This document shows, in pieces, positions 2,609-59,556 of a DNA stretch of 64,000 nt; the first letter of the stretch is position 1; every line of letters begins with the position of its first letter. The position numbers and the translations under genes are program-made. The notes under the pieces were generated by a model that ran no database searches, was not told where the DNA came from, and was given only the letters and a program-made list of their open reading frames with translations. This stretch comes from Piromyces finnis finn (taxonomy: Eukaryota; Fungi; Neocallimastigomycota), in assembly GCA_002104945.1 (NCBI GenBank), contig MCFH01000014.1, positions 434,001 to 498,000 on the forward strand, in the 5' to 3' direction.

Positions 2609-3528
2609 TGCTAATTTTATCTTTTTTCTTTTTTATATAATTTTTTAAACTTTTATATAATTAATTTTTTTTTATTAATATTAAAAATATTAAAAAAAAA
2701 TATTAATTTTTTTTAAAATTAATGGTTAAAAAAATTTTTTTTTAAAAGAAATTAGAGTAATATATATATTGAAAAAATAAAATAACTTTGAAAATATATA
2801 TATATAATAGAATAAAAATAAAATTAAAAAAAAATGAACACCTAACATTAATAATTATATTTCATTATGATATGTTAAAAAAAAAAAAAAAGAACACTTC
2901 ATACAAAAAAAAAAAAAAAAAATATTATAAATTTAAAAGGATAACTTTTAATTCTATTTATTTTAAATATATATTTTTATGGTTATATTTCTACTGTTAC
3001 AATAATAACATAATCATTGTTATTTTAATTATTTAATTATATATTTTCAGTTTTTATTAATTATTTATATTGAGGATAATGATATTATATATTATTTATT
3101 TTTTTTAAAGTGTTATTTTTTTTTTTTTAAAACAAGTGTTAAATATATAAAAAATATTATAAATTTATTATATTATGATATGAGTAATTAATATATGTTT
3201 AATTATTATTATTGCTATTATTGCTATTATTGCTTTTGTTGTTGTTATATTATATAGTGTTGTTGTTTCATTTTTTTTTCTTTTTTTCTTTTCTCTATTC
3301 AAATATATGTATTTTTAGAAATGAAAAAAAAAAAAAAAAAAAAATCTAGAACTAATAATTTCTTTTTTAAATTAATTATGGTGGTGTTATTATTACAATT
3401 AAATTTTATTTTTTATTTTTTACTTTTTTTTTTTTTTTTTTGATAATTATGATTAAAAAATAAAAAATAAAAAATGAGATAAAAAAATTACATGAAAAAA
3501 TAGTAATATTTTTTTTAAATGAAAAACT

Positions 3529-3936
3529 TTAATTTCTTAAATCCATCATAATGACAGACTCCTTAATATTATATACATGACCATTATCGTTGTTGAAAAA
3601 TGCATCATAAAATAATTTGACATTTTCATGATGAGGATGGAAGCCATTCTTCTTACATGATGATATTACATTCATACCGTTATTATCAGTTAAACGGAAA
3701 TAACTTACTTTAGGGGTGTACTTTGGTGAACATACAATAGCAATAGCTTCCGAAATCATTAATTGATATGAAAAATGTGTATGTAAATCAACAGAAGATA
3801 AAAAACCTGTTTGAGAAGGACTATAAATAGAATTAAAAGACATATAAAATGTTACAGAAAATCATTAATAAAATGAATTAGAGAAATTGAAAAAAGTTTA
3901 ATATATAAATAAAAAATATTTATATCTATAAAATTT

Positions 3937-8314: not shown

Positions 8315-11089
<2,775 letters not shown>

Positions 11090-46144: not shown

Positions 46145-46493
46145 CATCAAAAGATGAAGCAAAACATTTTATTATATTAATATTATTATACATATAATTA
46201 AGAATGAGAAAATTGTATAAATAATAATAATAATGTTTAATTCAATAAAGTCTTTATTATCTAAATAGTATAATGTGAACAAAAAAAAATATTCATTGCT
46301 TTATTATCATCCTACCTTCTCTTCTGAAGAAATTATTCTTTTAAAGTTTGATAAAAACTTTAATATTTTTTTTTCCTATATGAAAAAAATAAAAAAAATT
46401 ACAAACTTTGGAAAATACATAATATTTAAAAATAATTGAAAATTAAAAGTAAAAAAAAAACAATCTTTCAACAATTCTTCAATATTTATCTTT

Positions 46494-46516
46494 TTTTTAT
46501 TTATTTATGTATGTAT

Positions 46517-46591
<75 letters not shown>

Positions 46592-46620
46592 TGTATTTAT
46601 TTATTCATTCATTTATTCAT

Positions 46621-46655
<35 letters not shown>

Positions 46656-46688
46656 TTCATTTATTTATTTATTCATTCATTTATTCAT

Positions 46689-46718
<30 letters not shown>
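46494..46718. repeat. (TTTA)n tetranucleotide array with TTCA/TGTA variants
   Basis: Read directly; it generates the spurious IYLF-repeat ORFs 46436 and 46507. Confidence 0.95.
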
Positions 46719-46719
<1 letters not shown>

Positions 46720-47416
46720 TCAGTAGTAAATATTAAAATTTACTCAATTGCTCTACCTTTTTTTTTTACATTATTTCTTTTTTTTTATTTATTTATTTTG
46801 TTATTATTAAATAAATTTATTTAATAAAAGTTCTATTAAATGTGAATATCGTTATTTATTTATTATTTTCTTGATGTTTGCTATTATTATTTTACTATTT
46901 CTTTTTTTGTTTTAATTAATTAATTATTTATTTATTTATTTATTTTATTTTATTTTATTTTATTTCAAACTATTATAATTCGAATTATTTTATTTTGAAG
47001 GTTATATTTGAGTTGTGTATGTTATTGCTTAAATCAATATTTCTTAATAAAAAGAGTTTTGTTTTTTTTTTATTTTTTTTTTCTTATATTAACTTATTAA
47101 TAAATAATGTTTAGTACAAGATTAATTATTCTTTTCTAATACTATTATAAAAAAAAAAAAAAAAAAAAGCAAAATTGGATATTTTGGGAAGGTTAATCAT
47201 TATAAAAAGTTTAATTTTTTTTTTTTTTTTTTTTTTTGACAATTGTGTTTAAATACTCTATCTTATAATTTAAAAAAATTATAAGTTAAAATTTATTATT
47301 TTTCTATTGATAATTAAATAATCTTTTCAATATATTTTTGAGAATTTTAATTATATATTATTTAAAAAAGATTATGTAGTTTTTTGTTGAAATACATTTA
47401 TGTTGAAATATTTGGT

Positions 47417-52600: not shown

Positions 52601-55471
52601 ATGGATAATTCAAAATCATTTACTATTGAGAATATTAGTAAATCTCTAAAATCAACTTCTTTATCCAATGAAGAAAAATTAGAATTTGCAAAGAAAATTT
52701 GGAATACAGATAATAAAATCTTCATTCCAAGAAGAAGAGAAATGATTTTGGAATGGTTGTGTAATGCACTTTTAAAATCTTTACCAAAAAAGTACTTGTT
52801 AAAATATATATATATATATGTCTATTTTATTAATAATTTAAGCTTTTTCATATTTTACATGTTAAATTAATAATTATTATCTTTCTTTCTATTCTTTCTT
52901 ATCTTAACATTAAATGAAATAATTTATAATATTTATATATATATATATATTTGTAATATTAAAAAATAAAAATAAAATAAAATAAAAAAAGAGGAAGTCC
53001 ATTAGGAAAAGAAGCATTTCTTAATATATCATTCTGGGAATTTCTTGAAGTTATATTAAATCATTTTATTGACAAAAGTGAAAATATTCTTTCAATTAGA
53101 ATTCCATTTCCAGCAATTTATTCAAAAATATTCCAATGTGTTAGTGAAATTTCATCTAACAAACAAATAAAAAACAATTATAAAAATCTTTTAGAATCTT
53201 CAAAAAAGTGTTTATTAATACTTATTCATAAATTATCGGACTTTTTCAGAGTTGGTCTTGACCAATACATTATTTTAACAAGTGATATTTCTGCATCTTA
53301 TTTATATTGTTTAAAAAATGATTTTGGTAATAGCATCAACAAAGAATTAGGTTTATACTTTTTAGAAATTTCAGATTCCCTTTATGCTCATCAAATTCAA
53401 TGTCCAAATCAAAGAAAAGTAATAAAAAATGATTTATATGTTATATAATATGAATAAACTTGTTGATTTATTTAAACATAGCTCAACTATATAACTAATA
53501 CCTTTTAAATTATATATATATTATATTTCTTTATTTAATATAGGTATTTAAATATGTATCAACAAAGCATTTACAAAATTTCCTTGAAATTATTCATATA
53601 ATAAAAGATGATGAAAGTAAAGAAGAAGTTATGAAGGATGAACTTTATGAAATAAACGAAAAAATTAAAGTAAATATTGAAAATATTATAAATCACGGTT
53701 TATTTAATTTAGAACATATTGGTGGATATACAATATATTTACAAAAGCAAAATCAGGATAGTCATAATGAAGGTGAAAAGAAAGAAAAAAATCAAAAAAA
53801 GAAAAAATCAGATAATGAAAATTATTCTAAACAACTTTTTGAGCAATTAAATATTATTGGAAATACTTTGAAATATATTGAAATAGGTATAATATCAAAT
53901 AATCATAAAATTTTCTTTTACTTTTTTTTTTTTTTCCTTTTTTTATGTATAATAATAGAGATTAATTTTTTATTATAATATTAAATATTTAATATTTAAT
54001 AATAAGAATCACTTCCAATGTTATACAAGTTTTTCATTAAAGCTCAAAACAAATATAATAACATACAAAAAATTAAAAATTTAAACAAAACAAATACAAC
54101 ATTTTCACCAGAATTTGAATTTTTCAAAGAATTTTATTTATATATTTCAGAAATTATATTAAAGGACAATGAATATGATAAAAATATCGTAGAAGTATCA
54201 TTCAACTCATTACATAAAATGTTAGAATATATCAAAGAGTTTAGTATTTATAGACCAACAAATGATGAAATTTCAAAAAAGCAATTAGAATACCTTAATA
54301 AAACATTTATGGATAGTTATTTCTCACTAGCTGATAATGGTAATTTTAAAGTTATTTCTTTTTTATAAAGTTTTTTGATTATAAAAAAATAGCAATAAAA
54401 AAATTAATACTTTTAAATAAATTAAATTTAAAAAAATAATAATAATAAAATAATAGAATCTATTCAAAAATACATTTTTGATATATGGAAATTATTATTA
54501 TCCATTGATTATTCATTAATTGATGGACATCTCGAAAAAATATTACCATTATTAATCAAGGTACTAAAATAAATATAAAAAAAAAAGTATTAAATCTTTT
54601 CTAAGATATATTTTTAATATTTTATATTTAGCCATATTCAAATTCAAACGAAATTTGTCTTGAGTTTTTAATTGAGTTAGTAAAGTCATATAACAAATCA
54701 AGACAATTAGATAGATACTTTAATCTTAAATTAGATGAAATTATCAAAAGAAATATTAGCAATAGATCAGATATGCCAATATATTCAGCAAAATATATTA
54801 ATCAGTAAGTAAATAAATTATTTAAGAAATTGTTTTGTTAATATCCTTAATAACTAAATATCAATATTAAATTTTGTGTTATATTTCAATTTAAAAATAG
54901 AATGATTTATTCAATTTCACATACATTACCATCAATCATTATTGAAATTATAAACATTTTTACTGAAAAATTAAAGAATAACATAATTAATCCACCAACT
55001 GAATCAAGCATAAAGAAAAGAAAGATTAGTAATAAATCTAACAATAAGACAAATGTTCATCTTGATAATATTTTATATATATTAAATAATATATTAACAA
55101 ATATCCAAGTATCAGTAAACTATAAAAAGAGTTTTGATGTTGCTTTTAATTCATTATATAAAGAATTCATATTACCTACTGTACAAAACTTTGAAAATCT
55201 TGATTTTAATAAAAATGAATCAATAAGTAATGAATGGAAGGTTCATGTTATAAATCCAATATTAAAAACGCACTCTATTTTAATGGAACTTTCAGATGAT
55301 TATAGAGATAATCAAGGAAATCCAATGGTTTCTAATAGTATTGAACAAAGATTGTATTCTTATTCAGATGATTCATTTGAAATGAAATATATTTTGGTAA
55401 TAATTATTTTTTACTAATATTTTTTATACTGACTCTATTATTTAAATGAGAAAATATATAAAAAAAAAAAA

Positions 55472-55504
<33 letters not shown>

Positions 55505-58500
55505 CAATATTTATATATCTTATAATAATAATTTTTAATTTATCAATAATATTTTAGGCTAAAATTTATTTATTCCAAGTTGATATTATAGCAAATAAAT
55601 CTGAAAGTGAAGAATTAAATAAAATATGCAAATCATTAATTGAAAAATGTTTATTATTTATTGACTTTGATAAAATGGATTCATTATTAATTTATAAACC
55701 TGATGAAATTACAAATGATGTTGAATTCCAATCATCTTTCTGGAAACTTATTGCTGATAATATTGTCATTTTATGGTAAATATAAAACATTAAATTATAT
55801 ATTTAAATAAAAAATATTAATATAATTTCAATTATTTATGTTATTTATGTTTATTATTTATTTAATAAAAAAAAAAAAAAAGTCGTTATTTAGAAAATGA
55901 TAAAATTAGTTTAATTTTACATATTATTGTTCAAAGTTTCTTAAACTTTAATCATGATATTAATCCAGAACACAATTCAATTCTTAAAACTAATATTGAG
56001 TTAATTAATAGTACAATATTTTATGAAATTAAGGAAATTAAAGGTAATTTGAATATTATTTTTTTTTAATTAGTAATAATAATAATAATAATAATTAGAT
56101 TAATTGTTTTTTCGTATTCTCGTATTGTTATGATAGATTTATTCCAAATAGTTTATTTTGATGTTCTGAAAAACTTCTTAAATAGCTACATAAAAAATAA
56201 TTCTAAATCAAATAAAAACGGATCTTATAAATTAATATTAGATATTTTATCTAATTGTAAAATTGAAGATGAAAATGAAATTTCTGATATAATCACAAAA
56301 GATAAATCTTCTAATTATAAGCTTATTAACAAAGAGAAATTTGTTGAAAAATTAAATATTTATTTAAGTTGTTTAAATATTTTCCCAATTCAATATTTCG
56401 AAGTTAATGAAAGACAAATTTTCAGCTGGATTGTTTGTTTATTAGAAAGATTTATTTTTATGTTTGAAAATAAAAATATCACAAATCAAGAATATTTAAA
56501 ATTCCATTTGATATGTAGAACTCTTCAAAAAAACTTTATGGATGGTAGTGAAGAAAAATTAGTTACCGCTTCATTTTCAGATTATCTTAAATGGTATATG
56601 GATTCTATAAAATATATTTCATCAACAAATGAACAGAATAATGTTATTATAGAATATATTATAAATGTCACCTTAAACATTGAAAATATTACTTTAAAGT
56701 AAGTTTTGTATTATAATAATATTTTTTTAAAAAATATATAAAAATATTAATTCTTAATGTTTTAAATCATTTCATAGTCATATTTTAAAGAGAATTATCT
56801 CAAATAATGTTTGGAAAGGAAAAGATCAATCTGTTCAACATTATATTGAAAATGTTTATAAATATTTATGGGATGAAACTACTGTCCATCAATTATTTGA
56901 AAAGTTCACTTCTGAATTTAATGCTTTAAATATAATAGATTTAAAATTATTTAATGAGTATTTGACTAATATTATAAATTGGATTAATAGTGATAAAGGG
57001 TAAATATATGTTTATAGTTTTTTTTTTTTTTTTTTTAGCAATAAATTTAAAAATTTTTAAAATTAAATTGATAGTAATATGAAAATACTAAAAAAAATTG
57101 TCATTTATACCCCGTTGTTTTTATAATAGAAAAAAAATAAAAGACAATAAAAAATATGAAGAATTTATAAACTTTTTGAATGAAATTTTTGAAAAAATAG
57201 AAGTTATTCTTTTAAAATTCTTTAAGCAATTAAACACCAACTTTAAGAAAAACAACTCTAAATTGACGATTGAAGAAATGGAAAAGAAGTTCTCTATGTA
57301 TACTATTATGATATCTATCTTTGAAAATGCAGTACACTATGAAAAATTAACTAAACAAGGTAAATTTAATGGATGTTTAATTATTTAGTATATAGCAGAC
57401 ACTGGTATAACTAATATTTAATAATTATACTATAATTTATAAATTTTTTATGTATTTTTAATATAGATGGAAAGAAATTTATAGATATTTTCAATTTATT
57501 TGTTTCCATGTTAAAATATCCAAAACAATTTTTAAATGAAATAAAGGCTGAAAATCTTTGCAAAGAAACCATTGAAATGATCTTATCAATAATTTCTGTA
57601 TTTTGTCAATATTATTCAGAAATTGAACCTGTAATTGAAAATGAAAAAATTGGTGAAATTTTAGACATAATATGGTTAACTATGAAATACTCTAAAGGTT
57701 TATATAATAATATTTACTTAAATATTCACATTCTATTTGTTTATTATGCAAACAATTTAATATGAATTTTAATTTTAATTTTTTTTTTTTTATTTTTATA
57801 TAATACCTTTACTATATTAATAGATAATGAAGAATATATAGCTATTGAAAATAAAGCATTATCTCATTTAATAAGTCAATCTCAAGATAGCCAATTTGAA
57901 TATATTTATAATAAATTCATAAATGAAGTTGAAATAATATCTTTCAATGTCAAAGAAGAGGATGATAGTATTGATCATATAATGGTTATCATTAACTCCT
58001 TAACTATATTATTAAAGAATGTTTCTGGAGGTAAAAAAAAATAAAATAAAATAAATAAATAACCATTTTAATTTTTACTTTTCTAAATTATATATATATA
58101 TATTAATTTTATTAATAATTTATAATAATATTATTATTAATATTTTATTAGATCGTAAAATAAAATTCAAGCAAGCATTACCAATGATTATATCAAACTT
58201 TACAATTTTACTTCAACAAACTTCAAAAATTGAATTAATGATTAATGTATATAATTTATTCACAAAACTGATTAATGATATAACTTATAAATTAAAATCA
58301 TCCGAAATATCTTTAATATTGAATTCTGTTATTGTAATTTCTTCAAATTCTTGCGAACAAAGAATTCTCAAATCTAATTATAATATCATTAAAATTAATG
58401 TTATTGAATCTCTCTTTGATTCAATTTATTATTTATTACTTAGTTTGATTCGTTTCAGACGTGAACAAGTTTTAAATTCTGTTGGTTTATTTGTTGAATT

Positions 58501-59556
58501 AATAAAAGATATCCTTTTTATATAATTTATATTTTATATTCTATATTTATTATAATATTATTATATACTTAATTGTATTGAATCTAAATAATTTAGCATT
58601 TCAATTTATTATCCTTAACTTTTAATATTTTATTTATTATTATTATTATTATTTTATTTTATTTTATTTTATTTTATTTTATTTTATTTTATTTTATTTT
58701 ATTTTATTTTATTTTATTTTATTTTATTTTATTTTATTTTATTTTATTTTATTTTATTTTATTTTATTTTATTTTATTTTATTTTATTTTATTTTATTTT
58801 ATTTTATTTTATTTTATTTTATTTTATTTTATTTTATTTTATTTTATTTTATTTTATTTTATTTTATTTTATTTTATTTTATTTTATTTTATTTTATTTT
58901 ATTTTATTTTATTTTATTTTATTTTATTTTATTTTATTTTATTTTATTTTATTTTATTTTATTTTATTTTATTTTATTTTATTTTATTTTATTTTATTTT
59001 ATTTTATTTTATTTTATTTTATTTTATTTTATGGTAAATACGTCTAATGCATTGTTTTAGAATTTCTCAAGAAGAAGCAAACAATTCAATAAATATAATA
59101 AGCTCTTTACATCAAAAATCAGATATAAAAACTTTCAACGAACCATTATTCCCATTATTATCTAATTATGGTCATTATTTATCTGTTCATCATGCAACAA
59201 ACTTTTCTCGTTTATTGTCAGCTATATCACAAAAACCATCAACAAATCAAGTTCATGGATCCAATGCTAATTCACTTACATCATTATCTAGCTCAGCTGC
59301 TAATACTAAACCATTTATCAAACATATTGTTCATATATTAGGTGAATATGTTAATATTCAAACTTCAAATCGTCCATTAGATCCAATTAAAAAGAATGAA
59401 ATTATTACTGGTCTTAATGCACTTCTTGATCTTTGTGACGAACATGATAGAGAATATGTTTTAGTTAATTTAAGTCATGCCAACGGAGGAAAAATTATCT
59501 TTAAGAAATTGGTTGAAGAATGGAAGAAAAATTGGAAGTTTGGTGGAAAAGTTTAA
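52601..59556 (+). CDS. URB2: Nucleolar ribosome-biogenesis protein Urb2/Npa2, 16 exons (14 GT-AG introns + 1 AT-AC intron)
   Basis: N-terminal FIPRRREMILEWL. C-terminal Urb2 domain LLSLIRFRR..KGLMHCF..NFSRLL..FIKHIVHILGEY..GLNALLDLCDEHDREYVLVNL..FKKLVEEWKKNWKFGGKV. All exons were joined in frame by hand. Confidence 0.88.
58509..59041 (+). other. U12-type (minor spliceosome) AT-AC intron
   Basis: 5' site G|ATATCCTTTT, branch-site consensus TCCTTAAC at 58612-58619, 3' site AAATAC|G. Removal restores ELIK-G-LMHCFR in frame. Confidence 0.85.
58651..59030. repeat. (ATTTT)76 perfect pentanucleotide array inside the U12 intron
   Basis: 380 bp of uninterrupted ATTTT counted from the sequence lines. 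Confidence 0.97.

Follow-up and report, generated by a model that had tools for sequence, protein, structure and literature searches.

A very probable U12-type AT-AC intron with a distant branch-site motif in the URB2 gene of Piromyces finnis

The gene URB2 is essential in yeast. How are its last two exons joined in an anaerobic gut fungus of the Neocallimastigomycota, and which spliceosome joins them? The stretch of DNA analysed here (the window, 64,000 nucleotides from Piromyces finnis) raises this question through the 533 nt that lie between these two exons (58509-59041 on the forward strand; unless a contig is named, positions are those of the window). The earlier note had read this stretch as an AT-AC intron of the minor (U12-dependent) spliceosome. 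Consensus donor and branch motifs, an RNA junction, protein homology, and orthologous introns conserved in relatives now speak for the same reading. The stretch is very probably a genuine and conserved U12-type AT-AC intron of a neocallimastigomycete URB2 gene, and there is little doubt about the assignment to the U12 type in particular. The features concerned are collected in Table 1.

Table 1. Features of the URB2 intron and its surroundings, with spacing of the branch motif in orthologous introns
Feature	Position	Strand	Length or distance	Remarks
Upstream URB2 exon	58152..58508	+		Encodes the beginning of the Urb2/Npa2 C-terminal domain; ends ...GTTGAATTAATAAAAG; 58508 is the exact end point of pieces of RNA contigs
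U12-type 5' splice site ATATCCTTT	58509..58517	+		Matches /[AG]TATCCTT; ATATCCTT invariant in five orthologous introns
Branch-site motif TATCCTTAAC	58610..58619	+		Presumed branch A 58617/58618; second of only two conserved intron blocks
(TATTT)80.6 microsatellite	58626..59032	+	407 nt	99% pure, no C or G; found by TRF; length given by the assembly alone
3' splice site TAC/	59039..59041	+		First AC/AG dinucleotide 3' of the branch motif
Last URB2 exon	59042..59556	+		Carries the remainder of the Urb2 domain and the stop codon; Pfam match; RNA contigs run into it
Branch motif to acceptor, this window			423 nt	
Branch motif to acceptor, L061			90 nt	Nearly all of the spacer is T
Branch motif to acceptor, L057-L060			64 nt	
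Branch motif to acceptor, L002			34 nt	
Branch motif to acceptor, Anaeromyces robustus			32 nt	

RNA evidence was drawn from 4 runs of the same organism. It consists of assembled contigs, by which the presence of a junction can be shown and its absence cannot; the contigs were aligned to positions 55000-58640, and the acceptor was taken from their overhang. In three runs from two studies (X1, X3, and X4; P1 and P3) contigs match the window without mismatch up to 58508 and continue with the 30 letters GTCTAATGCATTGTTTTAGAATTTCTCAAG, which are those of 59042-59071. This is exactly the junction that had been proposed. The letters read ...GAATTAATAAAAG/ATATCCTTTTT... at the donor junction (58508/58509) and ...GGTAAATAC/GTCTAATGCATTG... 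at the acceptor junction (59041/59042). The junction cannot be shifted to either side, because 58509 is A and 59042 is G, while 58508 is G and 59041 is C. Hence 58509-59041 is absent from the transcript and constitutes an intron with AT...AC ends. The same contigs also skip seven other mapped URB2 introns, all of them GT..AG, and hence the libraries represent spliced RNA. The preceding URB2 intron (58031-58151) is GT-AG. Positions 58538-58640 are covered by no RNA contig.

In several runs, two stretches of 21 nt each (55600-55620 and 56264-56284) are matched with one mismatch by contigs of a different and more abundant transcript, which then diverge from the window with the loose ends CAGGAAGAAGGTG... 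and ...GAAAATATTAA. Such an overlap probably reflects a short coding word of low complexity that the two have in common, and not a splice form of URB2.

At the protein level, the junction 58508/59042 divides the Urb2 Pfam domain. The last exon matches PF10441 at positions 88-209 (E 1e-20, 75.1 bits, gathering cut-off 27.1), and the upstream exon matches positions 4-78 with 17.3 bits, which alone is below the cut-off. The intron is of phase 1, with exon frames ...ELIK + G(g/gt) + LMHCFR.... The spliced peptide ...VGLFVELIKGLMHCFRISQ... aligns with the uninterrupted sequences ...FIFIIQGMFHCFK... of Funneliformis, ...LTGVLGPLFYCF... of Basidiobolus, ...LFAVLRTLFACFR... of Cladochytrium, and ...YLQCFRI... 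of Spizellomyces. The motif (G/D)L(M/L/F)(H/F)CF(R/K) is thus continuous in four other fungi, and the peptide ELIKGLMHCFR fits Urb2 as anticipated.

Outside this species, proteins with 85-93% identity to the last exon come from Anaeromyces robustus, from Pecoramyces ruminantium, and from uncultured fungi (JGI and ENA metagenomes), which places the organism in the Neocallimastigomycota. The same AT-AC intron is present in A. robustus (145 nt) and in three uncultured metagenomic lineages, referred to here as L002 (118 nt), L057-L060 (166 nt), and L061 (191 nt; 3395-3585 of that contig). In an alignment of these four introns with that of the window, the only conserved blocks are the donor ATATCCTT and the stretch TT.TT..C.TTAA.TTT. 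A contig of a further relative (L064, 464-810, GCA_016295295.1) was left out of the alignment. It shows the end of the exon and the ATATCCTTTTT donor; in the 330 nt past this donor neither an acceptor nor an Urb2 exon was seen, and the sole feature is an ORF of low complexity that is unrelated. Either the intron is long in this relative, or the contig may be chimeric.

Outside the group, the site is uninterrupted in the URB2 genes of Spizellomyces, Cladochytrium, Funneliformis, and Basidiobolus, and these four fungi thus give no sign of an ancient, shared intron position. As far as sampled, the position appears to be specific to the Neocallimastigomycota, which would fit loss elsewhere or gain in this group alike. 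A search of the metagenome collection for related loci returned no match, and a scan of the same collection for the exact DNA pattern returned 47 chance matches, none of them in Urb2.

The intron begins with ATATCCTTTTTATA..., and the letters at 58612-58619 are TCCTTAAC, an exact match to the U12 branch consensus and the sole consensus branch motif in the intron; the sequence TTATCCTTA(A) ends at the presumed branch adenosine. GC content is about 14-33% in 2-kb bins of the window and mostly near 18%, and at such a composition the donor and branch motifs, taken by themselves, do not rise above chance. In the 64-kb window RTATCCTT was observed 7 times with 7.75 expected, and TCCTTAAC 3 times with 1.66 expected; for a stretch of 533 nt, the chance expectation of TCCTTAAC is ~0.007. 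The case for this site is consequently made by the RNA junction and by conservation, not by motifs alone. The remaining RTATCCTT sites of the window were considered as candidate introns of U12 type and rejected, no branch-like motif being found within 1.2 kb downstream of them.

Two further occurrences illustrate this background. The letters ATATCCTTAAT at 54841-54851 resemble a U12 donor and lie inside an apparent ordinary GTAAGT...AG intron of URB2 (about 54805-54901, delimited by sequence alone and outside the coverage of the RNA contigs). With no branch-like motif downstream, they are a chance decoy and demonstrate that the motif by itself is non-diagnostic in this genome. A second exact TCCTTAAC at 57997-58004, within the URB2 coding exon 57824-58030, is a chance occurrence.

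The three U12 signals named in the earlier note, i.e. donor, branch site, and acceptor, are all found where it had placed them. Their arrangement, however, is not canonical. Branch motif and acceptor of U12 introns commonly lie roughly 10-26 nt apart, with an optimum of 11-13 nt, and this distance is an important factor in recognition (PMC3584512). Here the acceptor lies 423 nt past the presumed branch adenosine, about 30 times the textbook distance, with the (TATTT)80.6 array in between; the relatives show 32, 34, 64, and 90 nt. The spacer is also 78% T, in conflict with the absence of a distinct polypyrimidine tract that is regarded as a trait of U12 introns. Because 58620-59032 contains not a single C or G, the AC at 59040-59041 is the first AC/AG that follows the motif. 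This use of the first AC/AG is common to all five lineages; for the four relatives taken together, its joint chance is roughly 0.003, subject to caveats for low-complexity sequence.

The TATTT array is missing from the orthologous introns of the relatives. In L061, a perfect TTCCTTAAC precedes a spacer of about 80 nt that consists almost entirely of T (80 of 89 nt). The length of this poly-T differs among short-read metagenome assemblies of the lineage (contigs L061, L062, and L063), and two contigs end within it. In the final 40 nt of the L061 intron, A occurs only at -6 to -2, so that this intron has no proximal branch adenosine. Other AT-only microsatellites in the window are (TATT)60 at 46483-46720, (AAT)40 at 10261-10379, and (AATAAT)26 at 9504-9660. 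Given these arrays of 119-238 nt, the 407-nt array is large but in character for the region.

Two ways in which the gap could be shortened before the second step were rejected. A nested GT intron that removes the repeat first would need a G, of which there is none in 58620-59032. An RNA structure that bridges branch motif and acceptor finds no support either, as the intron folds worse than its shuffled versions (MFE -11.4 kcal/mol, z +1.97).

Several other explanations of the locus have to be weighed against a U12-type intron with a distant branch site. The earlier note had found no well-supported GT-AG pair across the two exons. One such pair is in frame, namely GTTGAA at 58491 and the TTTTAG ending at 59060, although the judgement holds with respect to the RNA: the pair is used by no RNA contig, including the acceptor at 59059-59060 that would have spoken against AT-AC splicing, and contigs of three runs use 58508/59042 instead. 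Since splicing at this pair would also remove VELIKGLMHCFR, a stretch that other fungi retain, it is refuted as the main isoform, and the chance that it represents the true junction is close to nil. A rare AT-AC intron of the U2 type, for which the major spliceosome would use the long U-rich stretch as a polypyrimidine tract, would make sense of a spacer that resembles a giant pyrimidine tract, and U2-type introns are known in which an AG-free zone separates a distant branch point from the acceptor. The donor ATATCCTTT, however, is a U11/U6atac consensus and not of U1 type, and donors of this kind are invariant in five lineages alongside a U12-type branch motif, so that this alternative is highly improbable. 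The geometry could also be an artefact, if the 407-nt repeat were over-extended or mis-assembled and the living strain carried a short spacer in an ordinary U12 intron. The array length is indeed backed by the assembly alone, and metagenome assemblies of the L061 lineage conflict on homopolymer length. On the other hand, long AT microsatellites of 119-238 nt are present elsewhere in the window, enlarged spacers of 64 and 90 nt are found independently in relatives, and the unique sequence joined at both flanks of the repeat matches RNA contigs without mismatch. We thus regard such an error as distinctly unlikely, with somewhat more to be said for it than for U2-type splicing.

Among the alternatives, the most serious one accepts the U12 type of the intron and moves the branch site. 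In this case a weak, cryptic TATTTTATGG in the last repeat unit would provide the branch adenosine at -11 (59031), pairing with U12 through G-U wobbles, and the upstream TCCTTAAC would be a recently stranded relic. An adenosine at -11 falls inside the canonical distance window, the distance rule favours a proximal site, and an array that is 99% pure is probably young, in which case a relic motif need not have decayed. Nevertheless, the proximal TATTTTATGG has no C and would pair very weakly in comparison to the perfect upstream consensus, and strings of the TTTTA type are trivial in T-rich sequence. The relatives retain the distal motif at 32-90 nt, which is already beyond the canonical range, and L061 lacks any possible proximal adenosine. 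The motif in the window is moreover closer to consensus than the motifs of the relatives. We consider the cryptic branch site rather unlikely, and the distal TCCTTAAC is, as judged from these sequence comparisons, probably the branch site that is used in this species, if with moderate confidence only.

These observations may suggest a possible mechanism by which the intron with its distal branch site is removed. The donor ATATCCTTT would be read by U11 and U6atac, and U12 would pair with TCCTTAAC; after branching, the second step would take the first AC downstream. The T-rich spacer may be free to lengthen within the clade as long as it is free of AC and AG, which in this species would have happened via expansion of (TATTT)n. 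The short canonical spacing of branch site and acceptor appears to be relaxed in this clade. Tentatively, and just short of an even chance, we hypothesize that the minor spliceosome of anaerobic gut fungi works without the short distance rule and takes the first AC/AG however far away it is, here at 423 nt across (UAUUU)80. If true, the spacers of U12 introns would be a free zone for repeat expansion, and this would be the first natural class of distant branch points among minor introns. Classifiers which seek the branch site only near the acceptor would then under-call minor introns in the clade.

Public gene models of the relatives are affected to different degrees. The model of A. robustus already contains ELIKGLMHCFR, i.e. 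the correct AT-AC junction. This model (6001-6973 of contig L001, MCFG01000326.1) is a C-terminal fragment of 275 amino acids that starts at an internal methionine, and about 4 kb on its 5' side carry no called gene; the URB2 annotation of A. robustus seems to be split or truncated. In the Pecoramyces ruminantium model P0001 (EukProt), ...LLKNVSG is joined directly to EANN..., which omits the whole exon homologous to 58152-58508 together with the first residues of the last exon. The exon was probably skipped because the AT-AC intron was not modelled. The expectation that gene finders would mis-model this junction is thereby borne out for Pecoramyces.

Minor introns and minor snRNAs have been reported for Piromyces finnis and Neocallimastix californiae (Larue & Roy 2023, PMC10639083). 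The inference of a minor spliceosome drawn in the earlier note is hence correct and already published, and the presence of this machinery in Neocallimastigomycetes is not a new result. In the 64-kb window itself, Rfam at gathering scores detected no snRNA or other RNA family. A literature search returned nothing relevant on a minor intron in URB2, and no description of a distant U12 branch point in minor introns. Given the survey of 2023, the existence of the URB2 intron is ordinary; its geometry is not.

The basic finding adds one RNA-verified minor intron and flags wrong or split URB2 models in relatives. Beyond this, a short distance between branch site and acceptor is treated both as a hallmark of U12 introns and as a mechanistic constraint, from which the apparently well-spliced URB2 intron departs. 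The spacing of 423 nt, together with the graded series of 32-90 nt, allows the search of the minor spliceosome for its 3' splice site to be tested on a natural example. The locus also shows that the growth of microsatellites inside introns is tolerated in extremely AT-rich genomes.

Canonical U12 AT-AC introns of animals, plants, Rhizophagus, and other early-diverging fungi share with the URB2 intron the ATATCCTT donor, the TCCTTAAC branch motif, and the AT-AC ends. They also share the non-zero phase and a host gene of information processing, in this case ribosome biogenesis. In contrast, their distance of branch site and acceptor has its optimum at 11-13 nt, as compared to 423 nt here and 32-90 nt in the relatives, and they are typically devoid of a pyrimidine tract, whereas a long U-rich tract forms the spacer of the URB2 intron. 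Among the records that we found, no U12 branch motif is displaced as far as that of the URB2 intron.

Distant branch points with AG-exclusion zones are known from U2-type introns. Smith et al. in 1989 are said to have set out a scanning model for these, and Gooding et al. in 2006 reportedly dealt with distant U2 branch points as well. The URB2 intron resembles such introns in a branch motif that lies hundreds of nucleotides upstream, in a pyrimidine-rich spacer free of acceptors, and in the use of the first acceptor dinucleotide downstream. However, distant-branch introns of the U2 type have GT-AG ends and are removed by the major spliceosome, U2AF being bound to the tract, while the signals of the URB2 intron are those of the U12 type.
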